DNA of 64,000 bases, taken from IMG/VR virus record IMGVR_UViG_3300042402_002641, positions 216,020 through 280,019 of that record; one strand, written 5' to 3'. The position numbers and the translations under genes were made by a program. The notes below the pieces were generated by a model. The model had not been told where the DNA came from and made no database searches. It saw only the letters and a program-made list of their open reading frames with translations. Positions 6,649 to 59,801 of this stretch are shown piece by piece. The stretch's first letter is position 1. Each line of letters opens with the position of its first letter.

Positions 6649-6661
6649 TTAGAGAACAAGA

Positions 6662-8512: not shown

Positions 8513-8532
8513 TGAATACAGGAGCGCAATAA

Positions 8533-10803: not shown

Positions 10804-10805
10804 TC

Positions 10806-11162: not shown

Positions 11163-11194
11163 TAAGTAATAATAATGACTAGCGGAGTATATCA

Positions 11195-18501: not shown

Positions 18502-20161
18502 TATTTTTTATGTTTCTAAAACTGCAGGTAATGACAGTGACTGGGAATATATCAAGTCTAAATATCCCCTTGCGCATCGGTTAACCAACATAAGATCTTT
18601 TGACGACATTAAAATTAATTCTTTCACTAAGATGTTTTGGGTCATCTGGGATGATATACATCTAATAGACACATTTGATCTAACAGAATATAAAGCCACT
18701 AAGTGGGACGACATGTATGTTCACGTTTTTAAAAACGGAGAACATCACGATGGAGTATGTTTATTTCCTAAAGTATTGAACATCTCGCAACGAGAGTTTT
18801 ATCATAGATTTTTTACAGAAAAAAAAGAAATAGATATTTTAGCGAGCGTTCCTAAGAAATACAATGTATACTCACCTTCAAATTATGACGAGTATTTGTC
18901 TATTGATGATGAAATGTTTTGGTTAGTTTGGCCAGAAGTTGAAATTATAGACGAATCAGTTTTTAAATTGTATTTTAGTCATCATAATACCTACGATCGT
19001 AGAGAAAATCATATTTTTAAAAACACATGTAATAACGATGAATCGTATATGAGTGGAGTTATTCTCTGTAGTAAGTATAAACAAATTTCATCTCGAGAGT
19101 TTGAAAAACAATATGTGATCGATAAAAAAGAACATGATATAATTGCGAGTAGATTTCGATATCCGACGTATGTTATTCACAGCTATGAACAATATCTAGA
19201 AATTCTTAAAAATTTAAAAAATAAAATGTTTTGGGGTATATGGCCCGAAGTTGAAATAATTGACACAGAAATCTTTGATTTTTACTTCGATCCCAACAAT
19301 GGAACATACGACCATGATAGAAAAGAAAATCATACATTTAAACATCTGTTTAACAACACCGAAATTTATATTAACGGTGTAGTATTATTTTCTAAAGAAA
19401 AACAAATTAGTCAAAGAGAGTTTATTCATAGATTTTTGATTAATAAAAAAGAACACGATAGAATAGTATCAAAACATCGACTATATGATGTTGTGTTTAT
19501 ATCTTACAACGAATCTAATGCAGATGAAAATTACAATAAGTTACTTAATAAGTGTCCTAGAGCAAAAAGAATACACGGGGTTGAAGGTATACATCAAGCA
19601 CACATTGAAGCAGCATCTATTTGTAATACAGATATGATTTGGATAGTTGACGGAGATGCAATTATTGAAGATAGTTTTGATTTTGATATAGTTATGTCTA
19701 GTTATGATATTAATTGTGTACATGTGTGGCGTAGTCGTAATCCTATTAATGATTTAGAATATGGCAATGGCGGTGTTAAGTTATTGCCTAGAAAGTTAAC
19801 ATTAGATATGGACAAAACTACTCCGGATATGACAACAAGCATATCTAAAAAGTTTAAAGTCATGAATACTGTGTCAAATATTAATTCTTTTAATACTGAC
19901 GAATTTACTACGTGGAGATCGGCATTTAGAGAATGCTGCAAATTAGCCAGTAGAGTAATTAAACGGCAATATGAAGACGAAACACAACAGCGATTAGATA
20001 TTTGGTGCAGTGTAGGGAAAGATAAACAATACGGCGATTTTGCAATAATGGGTGCTAAAATGGGTAGACAATACGGATTAGATAATAAAAATAATCCTGA
20101 AGCGTTGCAAAAGATTAATGATTTTAAATGGCTAAGGAATATATTTAATAATGCTTACTGA
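18494..20161 (+). CDS. GT2-like glycosyltransferase with N-terminal repeated domains
   Basis: The C-terminal domain is paralogous to 17584 ('IVDGDA', 'YGNGGVK', 'WRSAFRE'). Three N-terminal repeats of 'MFW..W...H.FK...GV.L..K..IS.REF...KKE.D'. Confidence 0.7.
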   Translation: MYDIFYVSKTAGNDSDWEYIKSKYPLAHRLTNIRSFDDIKINSFTKMFWVIWDDIHLIDTFDLTEYKATKWDDMYVHVFKNGEHHDGVCLFPKVLNISQREFYHRFFTEKKEIDILASVPKKYNVYSPSNYDEYLSIDDEMFWLVWPEVEIIDESVFKLYFSHHNTYDRRENHIFKNTCNNDESYMSGVILCSKYKQISSREFEKQYVIDKKEHDIIASRFRYPTYVIHSYEQYLEILKNLKNKMFWGIWPEVEIIDTEIFDFYFDPNNGTYDHDRKENHTFKHLFNNTEIYINGVVLFSKEKQISQREFIHRFLINKKEHDRIVSKHRLYDVVFISYNESNADENYNKLLNKCPRAKRIHGVEGIHQAHIEAASICNTDMIWIVDGDAIIEDSFDFDIVMSSYDINCVHVWRSRNPINDLEYGNGGVKLLPRKLTLDMDKTTPDMTTSISKKFKVMNTVSNINSFNTDEFTTWRSAFRECCKLASRVIKRQYEDETQQRLDIWCSVGKDKQYGDFAIMGAKMGRQYGLDNKNNPEALQKINDFKWLRNIFNNAY

Positions 20162-21512
20162 AGAAAAAAAATACAAAAAAGTTATTGAAATTTTAGATTC
20201 TGTTAGTCCGAGTTTTTGTCTAGCAAAATGGCATCAATTAACATTGTATCTACAAAATGGATTTAATCATAGCTGTCACCATCCTAGTCCTCATCAGGTG
20301 CCGTTGGAGGAACTAGCTGTAAATCATAAAGCGTTGCATAACACACAATTTAAAAAAAAGCAGATGCAAAAAATGTTAGATGGCGAGCGTCCTAGTGAAT
20401 GTGATTATTGCTGGAAAGCAGAAGATGCAGGCAGAATAAGTGATCGTGTTTATAAGAGTGCATCGTCATGGGCAAAAATTAATTTTGATTCTGTAATAGA
20501 AAATAAAACAGCAGATGTTAATCCCGCTTATCTAGAAATTAGTTTTAGCAATGTTTGCAATTTTAAATGTGCTTATTGTAGTCCAGATTTAAGCAGCCAA
20601 TGGTTTGAAGAAATTAAAACTCACGGCCCGTATCCAACATCATACAAATACAATAATTTTGATTGGTTTGAAAAAACAGGAAAAATGCCTATTAAACATA
20701 GTGACTATAATCCTTATGTTGAAGCTTTTTGGAAATGGTGGCCTGAGTTATATAGAGATCTACATACCTTAAGATTGACCGGAGGTGAACCATTATTAAG
20801 CAAAGATGCTTGGAAAATGATAGATTATATTGAGGACAATCCTAATAAAAATTTAGTGTTTGCTATCAATACTAACTTATGTGTACCTGATGAGTTAGTT
20901 GATAAAATAATATCGAAGATACAAAATATTTCTATAGATACTAAAGAATTTCAGTTTTTTACCAGTGGTGAAGCACTAGGAGCTCCTGCTGAATATATCA
21001 GATATGGTCTTGATTACAACAAATGGTCTGCTAATCTAGAAAAAGTTTTAGATAACACAAATGTTATTGTTGCAATTATGACTACAGTTAACTTAACCAG
21101 TGTAACTACCTATGCCGACTTTTTGAGATACATTTTAGATCTCAGAGGAAAATATAATAAAAACGCCGATTTTAATAAAGTTCAGTTCATGACAAACTTT
21201 TTAAGATACCCTGAATTTTTATCTTTGACACTACTAGATCGAGAAACTAAAGCAACATTTACTCAAGATATCGAAACTCTAATAGCAGAGAGAGGTGTCT
21301 GGGACGGCTTTGCTACATTAACTTTTTCTGAAGTCGATCAACTACGGCGCATGCTAGATTATATGAATTCTTCAATAGATGATGACAAATTAACATTATT
21401 AAGAACGGATTTTAAATCGTTTGTTGACGAATATGACCGTAGACGAAATACTAATTTTAATCAAGTATTTCCTGAATTAACTAACTTTTACAACCTATGC
21501 AACAAGACATAA
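20151..21512 (+). CDS. Radical SAM protein with N-terminal twitch/SPASM-like Cys cluster
   Basis: CNFKCAYC (CxxxCxxC) and GGEP motifs. N-terminal C...C...CxxC. Confidence 0.85.
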   Translation: MLTEEKKYKKVIEILDSVSPSFCLAKWHQLTLYLQNGFNHSCHHPSPHQVPLEELAVNHKALHNTQFKKKQMQKMLDGERPSECDYCWKAEDAGRISDRVYKSASSWAKINFDSVIENKTADVNPAYLEISFSNVCNFKCAYCSPDLSSQWFEEIKTHGPYPTSYKYNNFDWFEKTGKMPIKHSDYNPYVEAFWKWWPELYRDLHTLRLTGGEPLLSKDAWKMIDYIEDNPNKNLVFAINTNLCVPDELVDKIISKIQNISIDTKEFQFFTSGEALGAPAEYIRYGLDYNKWSANLEKVLDNTNVIVAIMTTVNLTSVTTYADFLRYILDLRGKYNKNADFNKVQFMTNFLRYPEFLSLTLLDRETKATFTQDIETLIAERGVWDGFATLTFSEVDQLRRMLDYMNSSIDDDKLTLLRTDFKSFVDEYDRRRNTNFNQVFPELTNFYNLCNKT

Positions 21513-46818: not shown

Positions 46819-47922
46819 TCATTTTATCAATCTAGATAGTTCTGGAAACACTTCGGCCCAGTTTAATCTACGTCTATAGTCTATGGCATCGAGTGCGTCA
46901 ATCCAGTTGAAGTTGTCACCATTTGTACTCGTTTGAATAAACCGTCTAAGACGTTCAAACTGAGGACCCATGGGTATAATTTCTAGCATGGCCGCTTTAA
47001 CATCGGCAGATACTGTGTCAAATGATAACTTCCCTATTGTTAGTTCTGGAGCTAGTATATAGGTAGTATTATCCTGTCTAAGCCCATTGAACCAATCAAC
47101 TAGCTTAGAAAACTCTAGGGCATTATGTACGCCGAGATTAGGGGCTATATTAATTACTAGCTGTTTATCAAATAGTTTGCCAAAGCTAGCTACATTGTTG
47201 GCTACTTCAGTCCAGTTTAATGGATAGCGTATGTATTCAAACTGTGGGCCTACAGCTTCTACACTACATATCAACATTATGCTCCTACATTCGTTCCAAA
47301 GAGCTACATCTTCCTTAGTAGGCATGATGCTACAATTGGTGTTGACCACCAGACTCAACTTATCTAACGAGCCCTGCTGCTCTTTAACTTTGGTTAGTAT
47401 CTTGTTAATATCTGTGCTTAGGAACGGCTCCCCCCCGTTGAAGTAAATCTGTGTTAACTTGCTAAAGTCCACGTTAAATTCCGGATCAGATTTACGTATT
47501 TGATTAAAACTGCGAAAGCCAACGCCTACAGTATTAAACTTTTCGTCCTCTGCGGCCCAAGCACTGCTCCAATTACTTCCACAGGTAATACATTTGGCAT
47601 TGCATAACGGAGCAACATTATAATGCATTGTTAATAACTCAACTTCATATGGATCTTCTGCCGGGTTAGCGATTCTTCTTTCTCTACTACTAGGCACACC
47701 TGCATCTTCTTTGCGCCAACAGAAGTTGCAGCTACTAGGTCTATTGCCTTTATTAAACTCTTCACGTTGGTTGGTTAGATATACATCTTTATGAAAATCA
47801 ATTACAGATATTGCTGGCCCTGTTTGGTTAACACAACAGGCGCTTATTTTAGCTTGATTATCAGGTTCGGCAGAAACATACAGTCCCTTATAAATTGCCG
47901 CACAATAGTTAGATTGAGTCAA
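46819..47922 (-). CDS. Radical SAM protein (twitch-like N-terminus), paralog of the 20-25 kb family
   Basis: 'CNAKCITC' and 'NGGEPF' motifs, N-terminal C...CC...CNFC, and C-terminal 'D.RR...W.EVFPEL'. Confidence 0.8.
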   Translation of the reverse strand: MTQSNYCAAIYKGLYVSAEPDNQAKISACCVNQTGPAISVIDFHKDVYLTNQREEFNKGNRPSSCNFCWRKEDAGVPSSRERRIANPAEDPYEVELLTMHYNVAPLCNAKCITCGSNWSSAWAAEDEKFNTVGVGFRSFNQIRKSDPEFNVDFSKLTQIYFNGGEPFLSTDINKILTKVKEQQGSLDKLSLVVNTNCSIMPTKEDVALWNECRSIMLICSVEAVGPQFEYIRYPLNWTEVANNVASFGKLFDKQLVINIAPNLGVHNALEFSKLVDWFNGLRQDNTTYILAPELTIGKLSFDTVSADVKAAMLEIIPMGPQFERLRRFIQTSTNGDNFNWIDALDAIDYRRRLNWAEVFPELSRLIK

Positions 47923-47936
47923 GATATGCTGAATAA

Positions 47937-48665
47937 TTAATTATTCTTTTTATTAGCTAACAAGTTTAACAGATTTTTAATTTTTGTCAAGTTTTTGTAT
48001 TCCAATATATTGTCAGTCATGCTATTAACGCTGTCTAATATTCGCTTATGGTACACGGATTTTAGAGGAACAACATCCATCTTAACAAAGAACAAACTGG
48101 TTTCGGAATCTATTTTGGCAGTGGTTTGTGTTTCAGATCTAAAATATAAATCTTCCAGGCCAACGGGGTCAATTTCTTTTTTGTTGTTAGGATGATTACT
48201 TAAATCAGGATTGGTAGTTATAGTCCAAACCCACCTGCGAAAACTCGCTTGTTCACACATTACTCTACTGATACCAGGACTGGCTTTTACCAACAGTTCA
48301 CTATCTGCTACCGGTCGATGAATATCTTCTAAAGTCATACCCAATCGTTGTGATGGGATAAAGCCGCTGGGAAAGCAAAAACAAATAGCTGTTAGTTTGC
48401 CTTGATGCATGACAGCAACATCTTCCTCCAGTCGTAGTGCTAGATCTTGGATTTGATTAGAGTATACACCGCAATATCTTGCAGCACGTTCTACGGTAGC
48501 TTCTGATCCTGCTATCTGACCAAATAAATCTGTGTTATACTTTGCTAATTCTTCTTTTTTCTTTTGTATTATGTCTAGATCAGGAGAAGAAATAAAAACA
48601 GGTCCGGTATTACGAATCATATTAGGACCTGTGGTATACGGTGTTTTTACAAAATCAATCTGCAT
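47937..48665 (-). CDS. DUF3445 / heme-dependent oxidative N-demethylase alpha-like protein
   Basis: 'EED..V...L.A..FCFPSG......LG..L..IH.PV', 'R.VWTI' and 'FRSETQT'. Confidence 0.65.
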   Translation of the reverse strand: MQIDFVKTPYTTGPNMIRNTGPVFISSPDLDIIQKKKEELAKYNTDLFGQIAGSEATVERAARYCGVYSNQIQDLALRLEEDVAVMHQGKLTAICFCFPSGFIPSQRLGMTLEDIHRPVADSELLVKASPGISRVMCEQASFRRWVWTITTNPDLSNHPNNKKEIDPVGLEDLYFRSETQTTAKIDSETSLFFVKMDVVPLKSVYHKRILDSVNSMTDNILEYKNLTKIKNLLNLLANKKNN

Positions 48666-49014
48666 GCCTAGTCAAAAAGTTAACCCGCATTTTCTTAGGA
48701 TGAAAATATTCATTGACTACCTGTTTTGCAACTTCAAGATCAAATTCTTTACAACTGAAAATATCAAAGTAGGCTGTGCCATCTAATTCCATAAAATGAC
48801 CACTGATGTTACTAGTAGTAATTAATTGCATGAGACTATATCCCTGTTTGGGATCGCCTGGTAGAAGATATTCGATGATAGGTTCTCCGTGTGCAGTCAT
48901 ATCGATACGTGCCACTAACTCTTTTACGAACTTGTATATGTTATCACGATCTTTTACGGCAGCTATGTCACAGCCGCTGCAATCTAATAATAAATGATAT
49001 CCCCAGTAGCTCAT
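48655..49014 (-). CDS. S-adenosylmethionine decarboxylase-like pyruvoyl proenzyme (SpeD family)
   Basis: 'GYHLLLDCSGC', 'GYS..QLITTSNISGHF' and 'YFDIFSCKEFD'. Confidence 0.75.
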   Translation of the reverse strand: MSYWGYHLLLDCSGCDIAAVKDRDNIYKFVKELVARIDMTAHGEPIIEYLLPGDPKQGYSLMQLITTSNISGHFMELDGTAYFDIFSCKEFDLEVAKQVVNEYFHPKKMRVNFLTRHAD

Positions 49015-49274
49015 TATTCAGGCAACCTTTTAGTGACACCCAGAATCATTTCAATCTCGTTCCATTCTTGTTCGTGGTCTTTCCAATTATCTTTGTGTGC
49101 TATGCGTATGGCCTTGTTGATGATTGAGGGTTTGATCTGTAGTTCTTCTGCGACAGCTTTAACAGTTTCTTTGAGACCTTCTTGCAGATCTTCAAGCTCA
49201 CGTAGTACATTTGAGCCTTCAGTGATTAATCTTTCTAGTTTGGCTTTTTCTTCGGGACCGTACATTTTTGTCAT
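49014..49274 (-). CDS. DsbA(T4)/GapR-like dsDNA-binding protein
   Basis: Helical 'L..LI.EG..V..E...LQEGLKETVKAVAEEL..KP.IINKAI.IA'. Confidence 0.6.
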   Translation of the reverse strand: MTKMYGPEEKAKLERLITEGSNVLRELEDLQEGLKETVKAVAEELQIKPSIINKAIRIAHKDNWKDHEQEWNEIEMILGVTKRLPE

Positions 49275-49363: not shown

Positions 49364-50236
49364 TTATTTTTGAGCTTCACTGAGCACGTCGTACATTTCA
49401 AATACACCGCCGTTGCGCTCATAGATTAGACCAGCATAAAGTTCTGCTTTCATGCCTTCGCCCAGTTTGCTGGCAGCTACACGAGTAGCCCAGTTGAACA
49501 ATGACTTGTCTAGAGGATCGATCTGTTGTTGTCCGCCGCTTTCTTGAACCAGTTGTACCATCTGCTTGAAACTTAGTTTTTGTTCTATTGATTCTTTCAC
49601 CGGACGCTTTTTGCCTGTTGGCATCATCTTTGATTCATTCTTTTTGCCGAAGTATTTTGCTTGAGCAGCACTCATACCTTTCTTAGCGCCGTCTTTTTTA
49701 TCTTCGCCTTTCTCTCCAGCAGCTTTCTTCATTGGTTCTTTCTTGTCACCATCTTTGTCGATGTCTAGAAAGTCTGGCTTAGATCCTTCAGCCATCTTTT
49801 CTTTCTTGGCCATCTTCTTTTTCTTATCTGTTTCTTCTTTCTTGGCCTCAACCATCTTCATGAATTTGCTTTTGAATTCGGGTTCTACACTTTCTTTCTT
49901 AGCTTTCTTTTTGGACTTAGGAGCATCTTCATCATCATCTTCAGGTTCTGCCTTGCTGCCACCATAGTTCTTGCCAGCATGGTGTTTGACGCCTGTAGCA
50001 GTCTTTTCTATTGTGCCACCTGTAGAACTAGGTTTTTTATCGCCAGTTTTCATTTCTTCTTTGACATCTTCTTCTTTCTTTTTCTTGGCTTCAGCTACAT
50101 AGGTGCTTTGTCCTGCTAGCACACGCAGAGCAGCATCTTCGTTGAGCTGCACAGCTTTGTCTAGTACGGGAGCAGCTACCGTGGAGATCTGATCATCCAT
50201 TGAGCTGATTTTAGTGATAAGTGATTTAAAGTCCAT
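49364..50236 (-). CDS. K/E-rich putative prohead core/internal head protein
   Basis: Many LNE/VAE/VKE/MAE/KNE sites and a DxDxDG loop 'DIDKDGD'. Late promoter at 50269-50275. Confidence 0.55.
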   Translation of the reverse strand: MDFKSLITKISSMDDQISTVAAPVLDKAVQLNEDAALRVLAGQSTYVAEAKKKKEEDVKEEMKTGDKKPSSTGGTIEKTATGVKHHAGKNYGGSKAEPEDDDEDAPKSKKKAKKESVEPEFKSKFMKMVEAKKEETDKKKKMAKKEKMAEGSKPDFLDIDKDGDKKEPMKKAAGEKGEDKKDGAKKGMSAAQAKYFGKKNESKMMPTGKKRPVKESIEQKLSFKQMVQLVQESGGQQQIDPLDKSLFNWATRVAASKLGEGMKAELYAGLIYERNGGVFEMYDVLSEAQK

Positions 50237-50536: not shown

Positions 50537-51580
50537 TTATTTATTTTTTTTGGCTCTACCGGCTTTCATGTTAGCTAGCCAGTGTGCCATACGTGCTTTT
50601 TCACCTGATGAATTTTTAGCTGTTTTTCTTAGGCTGCTAACGCTGGCTTTGGTATTAACACCACTGCGTTTGGCAAGACCTTTGCGTCCTGGCTTCTTTC
50701 CATCTGCGAAATTTTCGTTGGCTTGCCGGCTCTGTGGCATGTGATCTTTGCCGTAACTGATACGACTGCCTGTGATAGTTTCTATAGCAACGTGCAGTGC
50801 TGTTCCGGATAGATGTTTACGCAGCCATTTCTCCGCTAGATTGTTGATGATCTTTTCATTGGCATGCACACGGCCGCTACCTTTGGTACGATCATGTACA
50901 TAAGCGTGGCATGCTTCGTGTGCTGCAATGGCAACATCTTTAGCGGCCTTACTTTCTAAATTTGGAATATTGATACTGCCACCGGGCCCCGAATCTTCAG
51001 TGTCTGTAAACATAGGAGAAGCACTGCTCTGATATACATAGTACATACCTGGCTCGATTTCTTCTTCATCGTCCGTTACACGATTTTTGCCTAATATACT
51101 TTGGATAGTCTCGTATGCAGTCCACAGTGTAGGAGCAGGTGCACCACCCACTCTTGTAGTTGGCAACATGGGTTTATCTTCGGAATCAAAATCGCCATAA
51201 CGCTGACGCAACTCGTCGTCACTGGCTTCAGCTTCTTTAACATCGTCGAACTCTTGCCCCTGAAGTTTTACCCCTACTATATCCTGTACCAGTTTCCATG
51301 CCAATCCCTTCTTACCTCGTTCTAGCAGTTGTTTGAACAGAGTTTTTTGTTCTTCATCAGCCATGCTGAAGAACTTGGCCAACTCCATCATGCCTATGTT
51401 ACCGGGATAAGATGCTTCGTGCTTAATGCTTTCTCCGCCACCACCGTCACCACCTGATGACCCACCGTCTCCGCTGTAGCCGGTATAGTAGCCATAGCCC
51501 CCATAGGGACCTGGACCGTATGCAGCCCAACGTGGTCTGCGCTTACGTTTTCTTTCAACAACAAATTCATGAGATTTCAT
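50537..51580 (-). CDS. Modular putative internal head polyprotein with HExxH module
   Basis: 'MKSHEFVVE', a Gly/Tyr-rich segment, 'AHEACHAY', and a basic C-terminal module after 'ANE'. Confidence 0.55.
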   Translation of the reverse strand: MKSHEFVVERKRKRRPRWAAYGPGPYGGYGYYTGYSGDGGSSGGDGGGGESIKHEASYPGNIGMMELAKFFSMADEEQKTLFKQLLERGKKGLAWKLVQDIVGVKLQGQEFDDVKEAEASDDELRQRYGDFDSEDKPMLPTTRVGGAPAPTLWTAYETIQSILGKNRVTDDEEEIEPGMYYVYQSSASPMFTDTEDSGPGGSINIPNLESKAAKDVAIAAHEACHAYVHDRTKGSGRVHANEKIINNLAEKWLRKHLSGTALHVAIETITGSRISYGKDHMPQSRQANENFADGKKPGRKGLAKRSGVNTKASVSSLRKTAKNSSGEKARMAHWLANMKAGRAKKNK

Positions 51581-51648: not shown

Positions 51649-51851
51649 ACAGGACGTTCTCCTGTGAGATACGGTAAACTGAACCATAATTGGAACCATT
51701 CTGGGGTACCTGGCTTTATGTTGTGTTTTTTCATAAGCTCACCTTTTTCATTGCCAGTAATTGAGATATTGCTCCCTTCGTAAGGTTGATAACCTTTGAA
51801 TTCTGTAATACCAGCTAACTTTTTGAGTTCGTTAATCTGCAGATCCGGCAT
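51645..51851 (-). CDS. Small hypothetical protein
   Basis: 'ELKKLAGITE' and 'IKPGTPEWFQLWF'. Confidence 0.65.
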   Translation of the reverse strand: MPDLQINELKKLAGITEFKGYQPYEGSNISITGNEKGELMKKHNIKPGTPEWFQLWFSLPYLTGERPV

Positions 51852-52881
51852 AATATTTTCCGTCTTTTCCTAGAGTTACGGTAACTGCGCTTAACCCTCT
51901 AACACCAACTAGTGTTGCTGGTACTTTAATTTCTTTTCCGCCCTTTGGAGCTGCCTCAGTTCTTCCAGCAAATTTATAAGTTTCGCCTTCGTATTCTATA
52001 GTATATGCTGCTGGCCACTGTGCTCCTGAGGTATATCTACTGCTTAAAGGAACTGCATCTTGTTTTGGTATATCGGATTGAGACACCTGAGTTGCGATTG
52101 GTTTACCAGTTAACCGGTTAATACTAGGATCTCCATCACCCGACACTCTAGCCGCAGCATTCCCTGCGCCTAAAGCCATAGCGCCTGCTAAACCTGCTGC
52201 CGCTAATTTTTCTTTCCAACCCTCATCTATACTTTCAGTGGCTTTCTCACCAGTTTTATAAACTTCCCACTTCTTACCAGTCTGTTCTGATTTTCTGCGA
52301 GCCATGTCTTTGAGTCTATAGTATTCGCGTTCTTCTTCCGGACTGTCGGCATAGGCACCATATGGTCCAGGAAACACTTTCCATTTCTTACCATTGATAT
52401 AGATAGCGAAATTATTACCAGGCTCTGTGTTGCCTTCATCCCAATCTTCTGGATCGCGAATTCTTTCTGTAGTTTTTCTCATACTTGGTGATACAGCAAT
52501 AATAGAATCAGGATCGACTCTAGGTTCAACCGTTAAAAACTTCCAACCCGGATCAACTACGATTTCAATATCGCCTCCGCTGTTAGGGAACGGTTTATTA
52601 TTTGCGTTCTTAATTTTAACCGCATCTTCGTCAAAGTCAACAGCAGTGACTATAGAAGGAAACTTTTCTCCTCTGCCCGTAGTATAGACTACTCGTTGGC
52701 CTACACGGAAATCATTGCCGGTTGCCTCCGCCACACCTTGATCATAGGGCTTCTTATGCTTAACATCGCCCTGTTTCTCAGCTCGCTTCTTGTCTTTGTG
52801 GACCCCAGCACCAGCAGTCTTAGAATTCTTAGCCACAAAGTTACGTGGTTTTGATGCGGGTATAAAATCTTTTGCTCTCAT
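51832..52881 (-). CDS. Modular putative internal head polyprotein
   Basis: Segments are delimited by QGVAE, TTE and ATE/IDE. Confidence 0.55.
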   Translation of the reverse strand: MRAKDFIPASKPRNFVAKNSKTAGAGVHKDKKRAEKQGDVKHKKPYDQGVAEATGNDFRVGQRVVYTTGRGEKFPSIVTAVDFDEDAVKIKNANNKPFPNSGGDIEIVVDPGWKFLTVEPRVDPDSIIAVSPSMRKTTERIRDPEDWDEGNTEPGNNFAIYINGKKWKVFPGPYGAYADSPEEEREYYRLKDMARRKSEQTGKKWEVYKTGEKATESIDEGWKEKLAAAGLAGAMALGAGNAAARVSGDGDPSINRLTGKPIATQVSQSDIPKQDAVPLSSRYTSGAQWPAAYTIEYEGETYKFAGRTEAAPKGGKEIKVPATLVGVRGLSAVTVTLGKDGKYYAGSAD

Positions 52882-53924
52882 ACAGTGATTCCTCTAGACC
52901 GAGTTCCGCCTTTGCGTTTGATTCTACTGAGTTCATCTAAAGCATGGCGAATCTGTTCCATGTTCATTTTTAATTCTTCAAACTGACGAGCCATTATTTG
53001 CCACTCGCTAGGACTAGCGCCATCAGCACGACTAGCAAGATCCTTTAATTGGCCAGCAGCACGTAGCATGCGATATTTTAATTTTGCAGGATTGGCTTTG
53101 TCATGGCTGTGAATCATGGGATCCATGGGATCTGCGGGATCCATCTCAATAGGAGCTTCTTTAATTGTGCCTTCATTTTTTTTGTACAGTGGAGATATAG
53201 ACCTTACAACGTCTTTTTTCATTTGATATGATTTGAAGAATTCTTTTTCTTTTTGACTCAACGGTCTATCGGTTTTAATTTTAGTCAGAATAAATTTAAA
53301 ATAAGCATCGTCATCTGCCAATTCGTTGATTGTGCTTTCGTTGATGCCCATACCGTTACGTACCGCTGAAAACAAAGGTTTAGCAAGTTCTCCTGCACCT
53401 GTAGCTTCTTTGAATCCTTCAAAGTCGTTGTTGGCAGCAGCAGCTCTAGCACCGCTGGCACTGACACCCGCTACACCTTCAGCTCCATCTTCACGTTCCC
53501 CACTGCTGACGAAATCCAGCACTTCGAAATCGTAGAATCCGTGTGCCTTGCCTTCAACACCGTTGTACTGTGTGAGAAGACTTTTCATATCTTCTAATCT
53601 ATCACTGCCTGCCACAAAGGTAGCACTGTTATATCCCTGCTCATGTAGGTATGAAGCCACCTTGCCTATGGTGTTAATGCCAGCATTATCGACCACATCA
53701 CCGGCGTATTCAGGAAACATTTCTTTGATAAATTTGATTTTAGTGGCATAGTCTAGAGGATTTTTCTTTTTATCCTGAGTCTGGCTGACAAATATCCTCA
53801 TGTCGCCACCTTGCTGCTTCATGGTGTCCAGTACCTGTTTGTGTCCAATGGTAGGAGGATTCATCCTGCCGAAACAGAACGTCACATGTTTTGCACCAGC
53901 TTCAAATAATTCTAACAGCAGCAT
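52878..53924 (-). CDS. Cytidylyltransferase-like (HxGH nucleotidyltransferase) with appended modules
   Basis: 'FGRMNPPTIGH', 'VAGSDR' and 'GVSASGAR'. N-terminal 'MLLLELFE'. Confidence 0.75.
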   Translation of the reverse strand: MLLLELFEAGAKHVTFCFGRMNPPTIGHKQVLDTMKQQGGDMRIFVSQTQDKKKNPLDYATKIKFIKEMFPEYAGDVVDNAGINTIGKVASYLHEQGYNSATFVAGSDRLEDMKSLLTQYNGVEGKAHGFYDFEVLDFVSSGEREDGAEGVAGVSASGARAAAANNDFEGFKEATGAGELAKPLFSAVRNGMGINESTINELADDDAYFKFILTKIKTDRPLSQKEKEFFKSYQMKKDVVRSISPLYKKNEGTIKEAPIEMDPADPMDPMIHSHDKANPAKLKYRMLRAAGQLKDLASRADGASPSEWQIMARQFEELKMNMEQIRHALDELSRIKRKGGTRSRGITV

Positions 53925-54259
53925 TAGTCGTAGTCGCCTTTTTCAAGATATTTTTCCTGCTCATCAGCAATGCGTTTTGCTAGGTCTATGAGTTTTTCTT
54001 TGGGAAACTTTTTTTCTCTATCATCGATGTCGTATTTTTCGCAGTAATGATCCAAACAGGTTTCGATAGGTCGTATATAAACTTTGAATACTCGTGGATT
54101 ACCTTGATGTTCTTTGTGTCTTTTCACAGCAGGAAAGAAATATTGGTTCAACATAGCATCGTCGTTGTCTATGAAGAACTTGAGATCGTCTAACCAATCA
54201 ATTTCTTGTTGATCATCTTTAGGTGCACCAATAGCACTCCACATTTCTCTTAACAGCAT
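53924..54259 (-). CDS. Hypothetical protein (putative head-associated)
   Basis: N-terminal 'MLLREMW'. 111 aa. Confidence 0.6.
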   Translation of the reverse strand: MLLREMWSAIGAPKDDQQEIDWLDDLKFFIDNDDAMLNQYFFPAVKRHKEHQGNPRVFKVYIRPIETCLDHYCEKYDIDDREKKFPKEKLIDLAKRIADEQEKYLEKGDYD

Positions 54260-55503
54260 TACCAGCTCCTACATGACCAATAACGTGCTTTCCAACGTGG
54301 ACCTGGATTTTTGCAGTTATGACGAGCACGGAAACTTTTTCTACGTGCTGGATTACTTTTCTTAATACGCATTTTCTTATCGCCGAAGTTTACCTTGACA
54401 ATATTGCCGTTAGGCTTGCGTACATATACTTTGGATTTCTTAACATCGCCAGCCATTTTCTTGCCCAGCGGAACTTCACGTCCTTGATACTTGGCTTCAT
54501 CTACATCACCTTCTTCCACGCCTTGCGATCTATAAACTCCGTCTACATTCTGTTTTGGTGTGCCACCGGTGGCCTGTACAACAGCAGTTAATAAATCGTT
54601 GAATTTTAATTTAGGATTAATTAACGCATTAGGAACAATAGTTTGGTCGCCATGTACTAGATCAACATCATCAAAGTAAAGTGGAGCATTTTTTTCTAAT
54701 CCCGCTTCTTTACGTAGCCAGTTTGTGAGTTTCTTTTGGTCGCCATTTTTTTCGTACCATTTAGCAACATTATAACCGTGTGCCGAACCTTCCGTCACGC
54801 CTTCTTCGTACTTCTGTGCTTTCATGTAATCACGGGCTGTGTCGATGTAGTCTACGGCTTTGGTGATCTTGCTCTGTACCCATTCTGGAAGATTGTCATC
54901 TGCTTGTAGAATGCTGTACAATTCTTCAGCGGCACTGTCTATAGTACGTAGATCATCCTTGGCCATGTCGCCTTCACGATCATACTCTCCGTAGTTTACA
55001 GGATCTTTGGGATCTTCAGGACCGTGGTCCTCCATTTTAACGCAGTTGTCTACGGTCTTGCCGCCTTTCTGTTTGGTGCCCATGCGCTTGTAACCTTTCC
55101 AACAGGCTTTGCCATCGACACCTTTTTGTTTGTCTTCTACTAATTCGCCCTCTAAAAACTCTAAACCCTCATTGGTCAGCATATCTATGGCAGTGTCATC
55201 CAATTCGATTACAATACCATCTTCTAGAATGTCTACAATTTCTGTGGCGATTTCGTGATCTTCAGAAAAACTAATGCCAAATGCATCACCTATCTGAAAT
55301 GATTCTGAAAATCCTTTGGCTTTGGCTTCTTTTTCGAGATCAGCCTTGCGTTGTATAATTGCTTGGGAAATTTCTGGATCTTTGTTGGCTGTGGGATCTG
55401 ATTCTAGATCGTCTAGTGCCTGTCTTTTGGCTTTGAGATCGTCCTGATCTTTAAGAGCTGTTTCGTTGACGATAGCGTCTAGTTTGGATATAAGGTCTCT
55501 CAT
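54259..55503 (-). CDS. Modular putative internal head polyprotein
   Basis: Modules include 'ACWKGYK..GTK.KGGKTV.NCV', 'EGDMAK..L...LPEWVQSKI' and 'AKYQGREV.L.K...ARYWSCR.W', separated by xxE linkers. Confidence 0.6.
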   Translation of the reverse strand: MRDLISKLDAIVNETALKDQDDLKAKRQALDDLESDPTANKDPEISQAIIQRKADLEKEAKAKGFSESFQIGDAFGISFSEDHEIATEIVDILEDGIVIELDDTAIDMLTNEGLEFLEGELVEDKQKGVDGKACWKGYKRMGTKQKGGKTVDNCVKMEDHGPEDPKDPVNYGEYDREGDMAKDDLRTIDSAAEELYSILQADDNLPEWVQSKITKAVDYIDTARDYMKAQKYEEGVTEGSAHGYNVAKWYEKNGDQKKLTNWLRKEAGLEKNAPLYFDDVDLVHGDQTIVPNALINPKLKFNDLLTAVVQATGGTPKQNVDGVYRSQGVEEGDVDEAKYQGREVPLGKKMAGDVKKSKVYVRKPNGNIVKVNFGDKKMRIKKSNPARRKSFRARHNCKNPGPRWKARYWSCRSW

Positions 55504-55916: not shown

Positions 55917-56597
55917 TTATTTATCGGAGATAACAAAGTTGTAGATCTTGCCCACCACTTCGGCATTACGCAGCTTCATCATTAACAGGGTCTGATCATC
56001 TTCTACCAACACATATCTGCGATCCCAGTTCCAGTCTGTGGCCAAAAACCATTTTTCCACAGCAGGTGTGCAGGTCACATGTGGTATCTGTGTTTTTAAC
56101 CAGTCGATATAGCGTTTTTTGCCTGGACGATCGTTGGCCATTTTATGTGGTAATAGATATACCCTGTAGTTGAATCTATCTTTGGGTAGTTTTTTTACAG
56201 TAATAGAGTTTTTATTTTCGTTAAGTATGTCTATAGAATCTGTTGAAGGCTCGAAACAGTGTTTTAACTGAGATCCAAATTTAATAATTGCACCGTTATA
56301 AAAATCTACATCATTGGTGTACAGATCGATAGTGTTACGTTCTATTCTTGTGGCGTATTGTGTCTTATCATAAACTTCTAAAAACTCACATAGGACTAGA
56401 ATTTCCTCACGATTATTCCAATATTCTAGTTTGTATCGATATCGGTCAATTTCGGGTTCAGGACCTTTACAGAAATCTTTGATTGCATCAATGGTATGCA
56501 ATCTCAGCATTGTGCAACCTCTGAGATTTACAGTAACCTTGTACAGCCATTTGCCGTAGAATTTATGATTGGTGTATTTGATTTTCTGGTTCTGCAT
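55917..56597 (-). CDS. Hypothetical protein
   Basis: 226 aa, overlapping the clpA 3' end. Confidence 0.65.
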   Translation of the reverse strand: MQNQKIKYTNHKFYGKWLYKVTVNLRGCTMLRLHTIDAIKDFCKGPEPEIDRYRYKLEYWNNREEILVLCEFLEVYDKTQYATRIERNTIDLYTNDVDFYNGAIIKFGSQLKHCFEPSTDSIDILNENKNSITVKKLPKDRFNYRVYLLPHKMANDRPGKKRYIDWLKTQIPHVTCTPAVEKWFLATDWNWDRRYVLVEDDQTLLMMKLRNAEVVGKIYNFVISDK

Positions 56598-58917
56598 TTT
56601 TTCCAGCCTCTTCTAGACTCTGTTGTGCTTTCAGCAATTTGCGTTCAGCTTTGGTCAAAGGTTTAGGCAATTCAGTTACAACAAAATCTAGTTTATCATC
56701 TACGATATCTACAGTAACACGACCACCGTTAACTAGATCTCCAAACAGCACTCTGCGACTCAGGGGTGATTTAACTTCATTGTCTATCAATCTTGCCAAC
56801 GGTCTAGCACCCATCTTGGAATCATAGCCACGCTCTGCTAGATATTTTGCTGCCTTGGCGGTCAACACTATCTCTATGCCTTTGTCTTTGAGTTGTGAAT
56901 TGAGATCTCCCACAAACTTCTTAACAATCTGTTCAACCACTTTGTGGTCTAGCTTACCAAATTTGATAACAGCATCTAGTCGATTGCGGAATTCAGGCGC
57001 AAAGAATTTCTTAATGGCTTTGTCATCTTCGTCGTCACGCTCTAGTGTACCAAAACCTATCGAGTTACGTTCGTTGTCTGCGGCTCCTAGGTTACTGGTC
57101 ATAATAAGGATGCAGTTGCGGCCATCTGCTTGCTTACCATTTGAACCTGTGACAAATCCATTGTCCATGAATGCCAACAAGATGTTCATGACATCCGGGT
57201 GTGCTTTTTCTACCTCATCTAATAATAGAATGCTGTTAGCATGCTCTTGCAGTTTGGTAATCAGCTGTCCGGCATTGTCTTCGTAGCCCACGTATCCCGG
57301 AGGAGCTCCGATCAACCGTGCTACAGAATGTTTCTCCTGATATTCACCCATATCAAATCGAATCAACTGCATGCCCATCTTGTCTGCTAGTTGTTTGGCA
57401 GTTTCTGTTTTACCTGTGCCTGTTGGACCAGAGAATAAAAAACTACCAATGGGTTTGTTAGGAGCTTTCATGCCTGCCTGACTAACAAAGATTTTATCCA
57501 GCAGTGTTTCTACTGCACGATCCTGTCCATAGACTACACCCTTCATCTGAGAATCTAAATCACTGAGATTCTTTGATTCTTTTTGTGCCACGGTTTCTAA
57601 AGGCATGTTAATCATTTTACTCAACTCGTAAGTGACCTGTTCAATGTCTACAATCTGTGGTACACCTTCCATACCTTCATCATCTTTTAGTTTATATCTG
57701 GCGCTGGCACAATCTATAATGTCAATAGCCTTATCTGGCAGTTTTTTATCTGCCATGTATTTGACACTGAGTTTAACTGCCTGTTCTATAGCAGCATCTG
57801 ATATTTTTACATTGTGATGACTTTCGTAGTATTTTTTAAGTCCTTTTAGAATCTTTATAGACATTTCTTCAGACGGTTCTTCGATAGTCACACGTTGGAA
57901 TCTACGCATCAGAGCACGATCACTTTCAAAGTGTTTGCGATATTCTTCCCAGGTAGTAGATGCTATCAGCTTAATTACACCCTTGGTCAGTATGGGTTTC
58001 AGCATGTTGCTCATGTCGTTGGAACTTTGATTAGCTGCTCCTGCTCCCTGCATCATATGTGCTTCATCTATGAATAGAATAATTTTGCCTTTCTTTTCCA
58101 ACGCTGCTAACACTGCCTTGACACGTTCTTCAAAATCACCTCTATACTTAGACCCTGCCAACATGGCAGAAATATCTAAGGTATAGACCTGATGATCTTG
58201 TATGAATTTAGGAACCTTCTTTTCATGTATCTTGCGAGCGATACCTTCGGCGATGGCAGTTTTACCTACTCCGGGATCTCCTACCATCAACACATTGGCT
58301 TTGTTTCTACGAGCCAACACCAATTGTATTTTTTCAATTTCTTCATCGCGGCCAATTACTGGATCGAGTTTGCGTTGTTTGGCTTTGAGGCTGAGATTGG
58401 TGCAGAATTGATTGAGAATCCTATCGATCTGATTACTAGACACCTGTTTGATTTCTCCTTCAACATCCACAGACTCTGGTTGTACTATGTTTTCTTGGAA
58501 AAATTTAACAAACTTTTCTTTAGTGACTCCGCCTTTTTGTAGAAAGTAAAAACCAAAACTGTTCTTCTCACTGAGCACACTGATAATCACGTCAGCCACT
58601 TCCATGCGTTGACGTCCACTAAACAACACCTGAGTAAAACAGCGATTCAGCACACGCTCTACTGAATTAGTTTTTTTAGGTTTATAGTTTTTTTCTGCGG
58701 TCTTAATGTCGTTGAGATTGTTTTTTAGATAATGATCGAGATTGGTTTTAACAAAGGCAGCGTCTGCCCCAAAACTTTCTAACAGAGTGTAGGTTTCTTG
58801 ATCACTGATCATAGCATATACAATATGTTCTATGGTAATGTACTCATGTCCAAGACCTTTAGCCAAATTGATAGAGTTTTCAAAAATGTCTTGTAGGTGT
58901 TTGCTGGGTTCTATCAC
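56563..58917 (-). CDS. clpA: ClpA-like ATP-dependent Clp protease ATP-binding subunit
   Basis: Clp N domain, Walker A motifs GDPGVGKT and GPTGTGKT, pore loop GYVG and IGF ClpP-docking loop. No M domain. Confidence 0.88.
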   Translation of the reverse strand: MIEPSKHLQDIFENSINLAKGLGHEYITIEHIVYAMISDQETYTLLESFGADAAFVKTNLDHYLKNNLNDIKTAEKNYKPKKTNSVERVLNRCFTQVLFSGRQRMEVADVIISVLSEKNSFGFYFLQKGGVTKEKFVKFFQENIVQPESVDVEGEIKQVSSNQIDRILNQFCTNLSLKAKQRKLDPVIGRDEEIEKIQLVLARRNKANVLMVGDPGVGKTAIAEGIARKIHEKKVPKFIQDHQVYTLDISAMLAGSKYRGDFEERVKAVLAALEKKGKIILFIDEAHMMQGAGAANQSSNDMSNMLKPILTKGVIKLIASTTWEEYRKHFESDRALMRRFQRVTIEEPSEEMSIKILKGLKKYYESHHNVKISDAAIEQAVKLSVKYMADKKLPDKAIDIIDCASARYKLKDDEGMEGVPQIVDIEQVTYELSKMINMPLETVAQKESKNLSDLDSQMKGVVYGQDRAVETLLDKIFVSQAGMKAPNKPIGSFLFSGPTGTGKTETAKQLADKMGMQLIRFDMGEYQEKHSVARLIGAPPGYVGYEDNAGQLITKLQEHANSILLLDEVEKAHPDVMNILLAFMDNGFVTGSNGKQADGRNCILIMTSNLGAADNERNSIGFGTLERDDEDDKAIKKFFAPEFRNRLDAVIKFGKLDHKVVEQIVKKFVGDLNSQLKDKGIEIVLTAKAAKYLAERGYDSKMGARPLARLIDNEVKSPLSRRVLFGDLVNGGRVTVDIVDDKLDFVVTELPKPLTKAERKLLKAQQSLEEAGKNAEPENQIHQS

Positions 58918-58920
58918 TGT

Positions 58921-59766
58921 TTATATTCCCTGTTGTTGTAATTGTTTAATCTGTGCTCGTTGATTTTCGCTGAGATTCTGTGGCACATGCACTTTTAGTT
59001 TAACCAAAAGGTTTCCTCGCTGTCTATTTCTCATGTTAGGTAAACCTTCTCCTCTGCAACTCAATACCGTTTCTGGCTGTGTGCCAGCTGGCACAGTGAT
59101 GTTGAGTGTTTTATTGTCCAGAGTCTCTATAGTTAACGAGGTACCTAACATAGCATCCCAAACAGAAATCTGCTGTTCTAAGATCAAAGATGTATGATCT
59201 CTGTGAAATCGAGCATGCTGTTTGACTAACACATTTACTATGAGGTCTCCAGGTCTAAGACCCTGTATGGAATTATCTCCCATACCTTCGTAGCGTATCT
59301 GCTGACCATGTTCTATACCAGCGGGAATCACAATGTTGATCATCTTGTTCTTACCGCCAGGTATAGAAATCTCTGCATTGAGTTCCTTGCCCTGTAACAC
59401 ATCCTCTAACGTAATTTCTATAGTGATATTCAGTGTTTTATTTTTCCTTAGAGGTTCTCGACCAAATCCACCTCCGAAGCCAAAGTTTCCGAACAGATCA
59501 TTTAGATTGCCTGTGCCAAAGTGAAACTCAAATGGATTCTGTTGGCCTTGATGGTGAAAGCCCTGTTGATTGGGATCCATACCAGCATCAATCATTCTGC
59601 GTTTGTCCGGATCGCTGAGTGATTCATAAGCCGTAGAAATTTCTTTGAATTTGGCCTGATCACCTCCTCGATCGGGATGATGTTTCATAGCCATCGATCG
59701 ATAGGCTTTTTTGATTTCGGCGTCTGTGGCGCCTCTTTTTAATCCTAGGGTAGCGTAATAATCCAT
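58921..59766 (-). CDS. DnaJ class II (CbpA-like) co-chaperone
   Basis: J domain 'MDYY..LG...KKAYR...HHPD', G/F region and C-terminal domain. No CxxCxGxG Zn finger. Confidence 0.88.
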   Translation of the reverse strand: MDYYATLGLKRGATDAEIKKAYRSMAMKHHPDRGGDQAKFKEISTAYESLSDPDKRRMIDAGMDPNQQGFHHQGQQNPFEFHFGTGNLNDLFGNFGFGGGFGREPLRKNKTLNITIEITLEDVLQGKELNAEISIPGGKNKMINIVIPAGIEHGQQIRYEGMGDNSIQGLRPGDLIVNVLVKQHARFHRDHTSLILEQQISVWDAMLGTSLTIETLDNKTLNITVPAGTQPETVLSCRGEGLPNMRNRQRGNLLVKLKVHVPQNLSENQRAQIKQLQQQGI

Positions 59767-59772
59767 GTTTAT

Positions 59773-59801
59773 AGTATACAATAAAAATAGGACTACGTCA
59801 A
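59773..59801 (-). promoter_or_regulatory. Sigma70 promoter TTGACG-N17-TATACT (dnaJ, leaderless)
   Basis: 17-nt spacer, 6 nt to the ATG. Confidence 0.7.

Follow-up and report, generated by a model that had tools for sequence, protein, structure and literature searches.

Short conserved sequences that border exchangeable units have been described in several systems. In T4-type phages, PeSL cassettes (Arbiol et al. 2010, PMC2839356; Comeau et al. 2014, PMC4122927) rely on an intergenic early promoter plus stem-loop motif, which is repeated through the plastic regions of the genome, brackets variable units and moves whole ORFs. One genome has motif-unit-motif where its relative has a single motif, the exchange being attributed to homologous recombination between motif copies, with no integrase, and mini-circles were shown. 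Within genes, the glycine-rich motifs of T-even gp38 adhesins and the conserved motifs of tail-fibre genes separate variable segments, and exchanges that create chimeras occur in frame within or near those motifs (Trojet et al. 2011, PMC3157838, citing Tetart et al. 1996, 1998). In lambdoid phages, short shared sequences at module borders have been proposed to direct homologous recombination and so produce mosaics, as in Botstein's modular theory, although such sequences lie at gene boundaries and are rare, and most mosaic joints lack them (summarised in PMC3029335). Integrons follow a related cassette logic, with discrete units bounded by a recurring site, arrays of several units and empty sites.

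Here we show that three short look-alike stretches in two neighbouring genes of a giant lake phage are worn copies of an 18-base in-frame connector found in more than 150 different phage gene contexts, at which small protein modules are gained, lost and swapped without breaking the reading frame. The window analysed is a 64,000-nt stretch of the 280,019-nt IMG/VR record IMGVR_UViG_3300042402_002641.

The linker copies and the genes that carry them

A sequence-only reading had proposed that a GVxE linker recurs as a DNA repeat and doubles as a recombination site for in-frame module exchange. The three copies are confirmed on the minus strand, within the following cluster:

54259..55503, minus strand: gene for a 414-aa multi-module protein, consisting of an N-terminal helical part, a beta domain, the CWKGY module (55027-55140), a helical module (54805-55026), cassette A and a C-terminal module.
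54787..54804, minus strand: linker copy 1, GAA GGC GTG ACG GAA GGT (EGVTEG, E234-G239 of the 414-aa protein), left boundary of cassette A, with 2 core mismatches to the canonical 18-mer.
54526..54786, minus strand: cassette A, the 87 codons enclosed by copies 1 and 2 (SAHGYNVAKWYEK...DGVYRS).
54508..54525, minus strand: linker copy 2, CAA GGC GTG GAA GAA GGT (QGVEEG, Q327-G332 of the same protein), right boundary of cassette A, with 3 core mismatches.
54262..54507, minus strand: C-terminal module (KYQGR...FRARHNC...YWSC), a free-standing small protein in pelagiphages and other phages.
52878..53924, minus strand: gene for a 348-aa protein, a cytidylyltransferase domain followed by a variable insert (53154-53342, GC 0.29).
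51832..52881, minus strand: gene for a 349-aa protein, with a DUF7230-like N-terminus (52744-52851), linker copy 3, then variable modules.
52723..52740, minus strand: linker copy 3, CAA GGT GTG GCG GAG GCA (QGVAEA, Q48-A53 of the 349-aa protein, two genes downstream of the 414-aa protein), whose first 14 nt are canonical.
50537..51580, minus strand: gene for a 347-aa protein of the same cluster, with an N-terminus (MKSHEFVVE) resembling the T4 capsid-targeting sequence, a Gly-rich stretch ending in GGGGES, where orthologues have GGVGE[AGD] followed by different modules, and an HEACH motif at 50906-50920.

Copies 1 and 2 are 279 nt (93 codons) apart. The degenerate pattern built from the three copies matches nowhere else in the window or in the whole record, and no other ORF of the genome carries [EQ]GVxE[GA]; however, the zero expected from shuffles is circular, because the pattern was derived from these same copies. 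Three copies alone prove little, and that the repeat is more than chance is shown by other phages rather than by the window itself. The modules of the 414-aa protein match different PHROGs and different phage proteins. Its AF2 model is of low confidence overall (mean pLDDT 52.7), and both linkers fall in low-confidence, probably disordered stretches. In lake runs, contig depth over the C-terminal module is 3-20 times that of neighbouring bins.

The claim that the copies are GC-rich and use similar codons holds. Val is GTG in all three copies (17% background in related loci), and the x codons of copies 1 and 3 are ACG and GCG (GCG is 6% of Ala codons), whereas copy 2 has the common Glu codon GAA. 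The accompanying claim of AT-rich modules holds only in part. The GC of the enclosed module, 0.383, is at the 26th percentile of same-size genome windows, which is ordinary, while the stretch 53175-53325, inside the insert of the cytidylyltransferase gene, has a GC of 0.291, at the 2.6th percentile, which is unusual.

Alleles, codons and breakpoints in related phages

Orthologues show that the junction bracketed in the window exists in several states. Among 62 orthologous loci typed (loci being numbered here with the prefix L), 30 have a short linker-free joint, 11 have one linker (KYEEGVAEGDVDEAKY), and 21 carry about 14 different inserts of 47-172 aa. Unrelated inserts in L008-11, L012, L059 and L050 carry the linker at both ends as a direct DNA repeat. 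The position of copy 1 holds canonical GAA GGT GTG GCG GAA GGY in L012, L040 and L059, and that of copy 2 reads QGVAEG, KGVAEG or KGMAEG after unrelated inserts in L050, L012 and L059. Cassette A is absent from most orthologues but occurs in unrelated proteins of other phages with near-canonical linkers: in L349-L351 it is 77% identical at the protein level and 76% at the nucleotide level to L349, flanked there by CAA TAT GTG GCG GAA GGC and by QGVEED or QGLQES. In the same lake runs, a contig of a relative about 87% identical joins 54507 to 54787, skipping exactly the repeat-to-repeat 279 nt, with 6 shared letters at the joint.

The junctions in the two neighbouring genes behave in the same way. 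In orthologues of the 349-aa protein, the same N-terminal module is followed by more than 20 different continuations, nine of them after a bracketed [EQ]GVAE[GAD] linker and the others after related hydrophobic-x-Glu peptides. The insert of the cytidylyltransferase gene is bounded in this genome by degenerate hydrophobic-x-Glu peptides (NESTINE... and ...EGTIKEA), while orthologues have 7-aa empty alleles or 63-204-aa inserts that begin with KGVEEG, EGIGEA or NEGIEEG and end with EGVTEA, NGVSEA or ESVTEA.

The canonical form, CAA GGT GTG GCG GAA GGY, occurs in at least 120 IMG/VR stretches, against 16 for a reversed control, and gives 157 unique contexts, 151 of them open in the [QE]GVAEG frame. 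In 154 of these contexts both flanks are distinct and show no conservation outside about -3 to +17. The consensus of the 18-21-nt linker is (R)AG CAA GGT GTG GCG GAA GGY, which encodes [EK][QEK]GVAEG. Of the copies examined, 180 of 184 lie in ORFs of at least 100 aa, 59 of 64 adjacent copies are spaced by multiples of 3, and no locus has copies on both strands. The exact 18-mer gives 56 hits in 596 Gb of genomes, nearly all in high-GC DNA, and only one lake MAG contig is of linker type. No paper in the library searched contains the peptide string or the Pfam name of the leading module.

Across unrelated contexts, synonymous positions are far more alike than codon usage allows. In a sample chosen by protein homology rather than by DNA, Ala is GCG in 11 of 12 sites (background 6.4%, p = 9e-13), Val is GTG in 13 of 32 (background 17%), and the exact 14-mer occurs in 7 of 12 GVAE[GA] sites, against 0.37% expected. 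The x-position variants ACG and TCG are one base from GCG. By contrast, at the orthologous position the synonymous sites of the linker drift as fast as those of neighbouring codons, with a fourfold third-position diversity of 0.385 in the linker and 0.389 in the flanks, albeit from only 9 distinct sequences.

We found 19 left modules joined to 2-4 different right modules, and 19 right modules joined to 2-6 left modules. In 26 pairs, one flank is shared at 85-100% nucleotide identity and the other is unrelated, with identity ending 0-4 nt beyond the linker edge. Shared blocks of 135-483 nt at 86-100% identity often end at the next linker-like motif.

A crossover point for in-frame cassettes and its alternatives

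Based on the above data, we propose, with good though not complete confidence, that the three repeats are decayed copies of a widespread coding linker that separates small protein cassettes, typically of 47-83 codons, in beads-on-a-string genes of giant phages, the window's DNA being found in lake-water metagenomes. The linker is the place where crossovers occur: cassettes bounded by it are inserted, deleted and exchanged in frame, both within one gene and between unrelated genes and phage lineages, and single-linker alleles mark empty sites. All of this evidence is comparative and comes from assembled contigs; no event was seen happening, and the closest alleles that differ at the junction still differ by 5-10% in their flanks. 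We infer that the exchange runs on sequence identity within the linker, using general phage recombination, annealing or template-switch functions rather than an integrase. It is worth noting that 18-21 nt is below the minimal efficient pairing segments quoted for Red-beta (23-27 bp) and RecA (31-34 bp) (PMC3945230), so that general recombination would be inefficient there and a dedicated factor is not excluded. The canonical DNA form would predominate because every new junction is made from matching copies, a turnover or drive effect, after which resident copies drift, as those of the window have. Copies 1 and 2 share only 8 and 6 contiguous bases and may no longer recombine. The peptide, hydrophobic-x-Glu followed by Gly or Ala, is probably tolerated, or useful, because it is a flexible inter-domain spacer, and it may be a cutting site for a T4-type prohead protease, which would make each cassette independent of its neighbours.

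Other readings appear less likely. GVxEG could be conserved only because the protein needs it, as a protease site or flexible spacer, with the DNA likeness a by-product and module differences arising by ordinary illegitimate recombination filtered by selection. This would fit the many junctions that keep only the looser peptide pattern with quite different DNA (NESISEA, KEEVEEG, GGVGEA, EEVKEA), its resemblance to the T4 gp21 motif L/I-X-E (PMC9026906), the Peptidase_S77 prohead protease encoded by the genome (87 bits) and the synonymous drift of resident copies. As a sole explanation it is nevertheless largely refuted, given the preference for rare codons and the exact ends of nucleotide homology; moreover, the four commoner-codon versions (GTW GCW) mostly hit conserved non-linker proteins, and only 3 of 120 such loci have two copies, against 32 of 120 for the canonical form. 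A nucleotide-level function in the mRNA, whereby a G-rich, rare-codon stretch slows or structures translation between independently folding units, is improbable. The linker does carry the rare codons GTG and GCG and four GG runs on the sense strand, and is always on the coding strand and in frame, but a pause would be served by any rare codons, yet one exact sequence dominates, resident copies lose it at the neutral rate, and predicted single-stranded DNA folding is no better than shuffles. Nor would this reading explain exact breakpoints or single-linker empty sites. We consider an assembly artefact very improbable, although the repeat is shared by many co-occurring phages in the same lakes and depth changes sharply at module borders. 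The same junction alleles recur in independent samples (L031-38, L013-14, L017-19, L052-53, L054-58), an insert bracketed by two linkers inside an otherwise collinear gene would need two compensating misjoins, Logan contigs from separate runs span both window linkers without a difference, and the repeat is probably shorter than the k-mers of the usual assemblers.

A dedicated site-specific system, in which a phage-encoded nuclease, annealing protein or recombinase recognises the 18-21-bp sequence in the manner of an att site or a homing target, is doubtful but possible. The conserved core has sharp edges, the breakpoints are exact, the identity is shorter than quoted pairing segments, and the sequence is identical in at least two phage lineages, one T4-like and one lacking gp23 and S77. 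On the other hand, a search for PF00589 gave no match in the window's genome or in four other linker-bearing giant-phage records, two of the five genomes being at least 97% complete, while the control was detected in 14 of 14 genomes. No integrase or homing-endonuclease family was found among the Pfam hits of the window's neighbouring genes, recombinase and nuclease families beyond these not having been surveyed, and the site has no inverted repeat or hairpin. It remains conceivable, though unlikely, that the linker is a dual-purpose standard part, being at the DNA level the recognised site of such an unidentified function, acting across genes and even unrelated giant-phage lineages, and at the protein level the prohead-protease cutting site. 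Each polyprotein would then work as an operon written in protein, whose members can be added or removed without harm, and together these would form a natural combinatorial system for evolving small injected host-takeover or anti-defence proteins.

Comparison with described systems

Phage mosaicism is usually described at the level of genes, and most mosaic joints show no shared sequence (PMC3029335). Here one short coding sequence marks more than 150 joints inside genes and preserves the frame, making domain shuffling directly visible and countable. The linker cuts hundreds of dark-matter phage ORFs into their natural units, small modules of about 50-80 residues, many of which also exist as free-standing genes in other phages. 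It also offers a concrete case in which a sequence may persist because it promotes its own spread through recombination.

The peptide V-A-E followed by G resembles the T4 gp21 site, cut after Glu in L/I-X-E (PMC9026906), but its P3 residue is Val, not Leu or Ile. A gp21-type protease is encoded by the window's phage, and the N-terminus of the 347-aa protein is close to the T4 capsid-targeting sequence MKTYQEFIAE (PMC8442874). A Peptidase_S77 is also present in 3 of 5 other linker-bearing records, but is absent from a 99%-complete 343-kb record with four canonical linkers; two linker-bearing giant phages lack a detectable gp21 or gp23, and one carrier protein is an enzyme, a cytidylyltransferase. 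The sequence-only reading's term "cleavage linker" is plausible, but nothing here shows cutting, and a complex prediction of protease with linker peptide gave no answer. If the peptide is also a protease site, this would explain why such insertions are tolerated and point to a large pool of candidate injected proteins. Polyvalent proteins of phages and conjugative elements (Iyer et al. 2017, as cited in PMC7824862) likewise string together many unrelated domains and are thought to be delivered and then processed, but they were described without a universal linker conserved at the DNA level, and their domains are mostly recognisable enzymes, whereas most modules here are small and unknown.

The same reading's description of the scheme as integron-like fails as a mechanism. 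Beyond the absence of a detected tyrosine recombinase in the five genomes examined, single-strand folds of the three window copies and one canonical copy are no better than shuffles (z from -0.25 to -1.26), with no attC-like hairpin. The site is an 18-21-nt, purine-rich direct repeat, and the cassettes are in-frame segments of 47-170 codons inside long ORFs rather than whole, mostly promoterless genes. Compared with the gp38 motifs, which belong to one protein family, form its structural core and keep a fixed order, exchange points likewise coincide with a conserved in-frame motif, but the linker joins unrelated modules in many unrelated genes and lineages and is conserved at the nucleotide level against codon usage. 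The resemblance to PeSL shuffling lies in a repeated motif that brackets a variable unit where other loci have a single motif, in a phage that is itself T4-like, with a gp43-type polymerase, gp23 and a gp21-type protease; however, the motif here is coding sequence without a stem-loop, and it moves pieces of proteins rather than whole ORFs.

Modular genes and the three linker copies

The 280,019-nt IMG/VR virus record, whose last 64 kb are analyzed here, is that of a T4-like phage with a gp43-type DNA polymerase, a gp23-type capsid protein and a gp21-type prohead protease, Peptidase_S77, and its DNA occurs in many lake-water metagenome runs. The repeats lie in a minus-strand cluster of genes with no assigned function:

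54259-55503 (minus strand), a 414-aa protein
a 111-aa protein (minus strand)
52878-53924 (minus strand), a 348-aa protein with a cytidylyltransferase domain and a long tail
51832-52881 (minus strand), a 349-aa protein with a DUF7230-like N-terminus
50537-51580 (minus strand), a 347-aa protein

The three repeats are exactly where the sequence-only reading had placed them, and they encode EGVTEG and QGVEEG in the first gene and QGVAEA in the fourth. The first two are 279 nt apart and enclose 87 codons (cassette A). Nothing else in the 280 kb matches the pattern derived from these copies or the peptide. However, because the pattern was built from the three copies, its comparison with shuffled sequence is circular, and the window alone cannot show that the repeat is more than chance. 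The suggestion that the enclosed module and an insert are AT-rich is borne out only in part, cassette A being ordinary in GC, and only the insert in the cytidylyltransferase gene is low.

The proteins are strings of small modules, and the 414-aa protein matches different PHROGs and different phage proteins piece by piece. A 38-residue CWKGY module is shared with cyanophages at up to 86% nucleotide identity over 88 nt, a helical module ends exactly where a cyanophage S-WAM2 protein ends, and the C-terminal 80 residues form a free-standing small protein in pelagiphages and other phages. The two linkers in this gene sit precisely at those module borders, and the third sits right after the DUF7230-like module. 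Two very short stretches, 55041-55128 (88 nt, the CWKGY module) and 49711-49781 (71 nt), are 86% and 83% identical in DNA to distant marine cyanophages (Synechococcus phage Sf-CH11, Prochlorococcus phage P-TIM68), while nothing around them matches; module-sized DNA islands are thus shared across very distant phages. In four lake runs the summed contig depth over the C-terminal module and the CWKGY module (54249-54442 and 55025-55121) is 3-20 times that of neighbouring bins (for example 346 against 12 in one run, X14), and many co-occurring phages therefore carry these modules at 85% identity or more. The AF2 model of the 414-aa protein (mean pLDDT 52.7) is too poor for a fold search, although both linkers fall in its low-confidence stretches, 231-248 and 273-353. 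PDB sequence searches of the three proteins gave nothing useful.

Other genes of the window are also of note. Four consecutive large tail-fibre-like genes (4537-13003, plus strand; 703, 616, 756 and 602 aa) share the same N-terminal region of about 80 residues (phrog_14394 and phrog_15511) and differ downstream, which is a second, conventional case of module swapping. At 56563-59781 (minus strand), a ClpA/ClpB-type double AAA+ chaperone (784 aa) lies directly upstream of a full DnaJ (J domain plus C-terminal domain, 286 aa), an unusual chaperone pair for a phage. Auxiliary metabolic genes, at 47937-49274 (minus strand) and 20151-21512 (plus strand), 46819-47922 (minus strand), comprise a haem-dependent oxidative N-demethylase alpha-like protein, an S-adenosylmethionine decarboxylase, a T4 DsbA-like regulator (24.6 bits, just under the 25-bit cut-off) and two radical-SAM-like proteins.

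Empty, single-linker and occupied alleles at the same junctions

A scan of IMG/VR found 314 stretches encoding relatives of the 414-aa protein, of which 80 loci, ranging from 243 to 539 residues, were kept. At the junction between the helical module and the C-terminal module, 62 loci could be typed: 30 have a short joint without the motif, for example KYAEDTQTDEAKY, 11 have exactly one linker (KYEEGVAEGDVDEAKY), and 21 carry about 14 different inserts of 47-172 residues. The window's cassette (loci L008-11) and the unrelated inserts in loci L012, L059 and L050 carry the linker at both ends, while L015 and L013 have weaker versions. At the DNA level this is a direct repeat, RAA GGT GTG GCG GAA GGY, on both sides of the insert, with one copy at single-linker sites.

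The same holds in the neighbouring genes. After the DUF7230-like module, orthologues continue with more than 20 different sequences, nine of them directly after [EQ]GVAE[GAD]. In the cytidylyltransferase gene, 7-residue empty alleles alternate with inserts of 63-204 residues bounded by KGVEEG, EGIGEA, EGVTEA, NGVSEA and similar peptides. A second polymorphic junction exists in the 414-aa gene (the 55027-55140 junction, after ...DNCVKM), where orthologues insert 40-80-residue cassettes between the CWKGY module and EDHGPE, bounded by GEDVTME, GEDLEES or GENLDEY peptides rather than the canonical linker. In the lake runs themselves, a contig of a relative about 87% identical joins 54507 to 54787, skipping exactly 279 nt with six shared letters at the joint, and other contigs carry the linker-free joint.

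Conservation of the linker as DNA and position of the breakpoints

The linker is conserved as DNA, against codon usage. In the loci found by protein homology, which are therefore not chosen by DNA, Val in the motif is GTG in 25 of 52 cases and Ala is GCG in 19 of 24, compared with background frequencies of 17% and 6%. The x-position variants ACG and TCG are single-base neighbours of GCG. After allowing each left and each right context only once, GCG is 11 of 12 (p = 9e-13), GTG is 13 of 32 (p = 0.0015), and the exact 14-mer GGTGTGGCGGAAGG is present in 7 of 12 GVAE[GA] sites, against 0.37% expected.

The canonical pattern occurs in at least 120 IMG/VR stretches, whereas the same letters read backwards give 16. 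The 120 loci hold 157 unique contexts, 151 of them open in the [QE]GVAEG frame, and 32 loci have 2-4 copies. In 154 contexts both flanks are distinct and carry no information, and the conserved core runs from about -3 to +17, giving (R)AG CAA GGT GTG GCG GAA GGC. Adjacent copies are spaced by multiples of three in 59 of 64 cases, mostly 141-250 nt, and never lie on both strands of one locus. The carrier ORFs read as beads on a string, with up to seven bracketed linker-like peptides in one protein of more than 1,500 residues. Giant-phage records hold one to four exact copies each. A 99%-complete giant phage with no detectable gp23 or gp21 (IMGVR_UViG_3300032268_000986, 342,865 nt) carries four canonical linkers within 8 kb (173493-181230), and the linker therefore crosses phage lineages.

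In 596 Gb of bacterial and archaeal genomes the exact 18-mer occurs 56 times, nearly all in high-GC DNA. The only linker-type hit is CAILDT010000116.1, an 8,950-nt contig of a lake 'Bacteroidetes' MAG with three in-frame canonical copies and GC 0.39; it is probably a phage contig binned with a bacterium and might hint at a host. Four isolate phages that share modules with the window (Pelagibacter phage Aegir, Phage C48C1, S-WAM2 and DSL-LC02) lack the 14-mer even with one mismatch, so the DNA linker is not a property of the modules themselves.

The decisive evidence is that breakpoints fall on the linker. Among 188 linker contexts, 19 left modules are joined to two to four different right modules, and 19 right modules to two to six different left modules. 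Twenty-six pairs share one flank at 85-100% nucleotide identity over 90 nt and are unrelated on the other side, the run of identity ending 0-4 nt beyond the edge of the 18-nt linker. Followed outward, many shared blocks end at the next linker-like motif, for example 135-147 nt at 97-98% in the pair of linker-bearing loci L094/L160, 447 nt at 99% in L175/L182 and 483 nt in L147/L171. The unit of exchange is therefore a cassette bounded by linkers on both sides. One contig (L160, 3461-4785) carries the same 141-nt module twice at 100% identity, each copy followed by a canonical linker and then by a different module, an intragenomic duplication with different partners. Cassette A itself occurs at 76% nucleotide identity inside unrelated proteins of other phages, where it is preceded by CAA TAT GTG GCG GAA GGC and followed by QGVEED or QGLQES.

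Alternative explanations for these patterns were considered. Chance is rejected by the reversed-pattern control and by frame and ORF status, and codon usage does not account for the likeness at the DNA level. Chimeric assembly at a shared short word is unlikely, as the same alleles recur in independent samples, a bracketed insert in a collinear gene would need two compensating misjoins, and contigs from separate runs span both window linkers without a difference. Extra purifying selection on resident copies is not seen either: at the orthologous position in the 414-aa gene, fourfold third-position diversity is 0.385 in the linker and 0.389 in the flanking conserved codons, albeit from only nine distinct sequences. 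Resident copies therefore drift like their neighbours, and the window's three copies, each with two or three core mismatches, are examples. Yet across unrelated contexts the canonical form dominates. The simplest reading is turnover, in which new junctions can only be made between matching copies, so that the commonest version keeps being copied into new places while old junctions decay. This remains an inference.

Proposed mechanism and relation to known systems

Based on the above data, all of them comparative, the linker is where crossovers have occurred, repeatedly and recently, and cassettes move as in-frame units. The core proposal of the sequence-only reading, that the linker serves as a recombination site for in-frame module exchange, is thus supported by evidence from outside the window. 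We infer that exchange depends on identity within the linker and uses general phage recombination, annealing or template switching. No tyrosine recombinase is found in five linker-bearing genomes, no hairpin is predicted, and no integrase or homing-endonuclease family appears among the neighbouring genes. It is worth noting, however, that 18-21 nt is below the minimal efficient pairing segments quoted for Red-beta (23-27 bp) and RecA (31-34 bp) (PMC3945230), and a dedicated factor cannot be excluded.

The peptide could have a role of its own, as the same reading had implied by calling it a cleavage linker. All junctions, canonical or not, keep a hydrophobic-x-Glu pattern followed by Gly or Ala, which may fit the T4 gp21 rule of cutting after Glu in L/I-X-E (PMC9026906), and the phage encodes that protease. 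The neighbouring 347-aa protein begins MKSHEFVVE, close to the T4 capsid-targeting sequence MKTYQEFIAE (PMC8442874), followed by an Arg/Lys-rich stretch, a Gly/Tyr-rich stretch and an HEACH motif (50906-50920) that could be a minimal zinc-peptidase site; it has no Pfam, PHROG or PDB match. If the linkers are cut in the prohead, each cassette would be independent of its neighbours, which would explain why insertions are tolerated. Nevertheless, we regard this possibility as tentative and less likely than not, since the P3 residue is Val rather than Leu or Ile, one carrier protein is an enzyme, and the 99%-complete 343-kb phage with four canonical linkers has no detectable gp21 or gp23. Prediction of a protease-peptide complex gave no answer (score 0.00) and counts as evidence neither way.

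No description of this linker was found in the literature searched. It is not an integron, as three defining features were looked for and not found, and the integron analogy of the sequence-only reading fails as a mechanism. The logic matches that of the PeSL cassettes of T4-type phages, where motif-ORF-motif in one phage corresponds to a single motif in its relative and mini-circles were detected (PMC2839356), and that of the conserved motifs of T-even adhesin genes, at which chimeras form (PMC3157838). It also works like the 'boundary sequence' idea for lambdoid phages (PMC3029335). It differs in that the site is coding, in frame and inside genes, in that it joins unrelated modules in many genes and at least two phage lineages, and in that it is conserved at the nucleotide level against codon usage.
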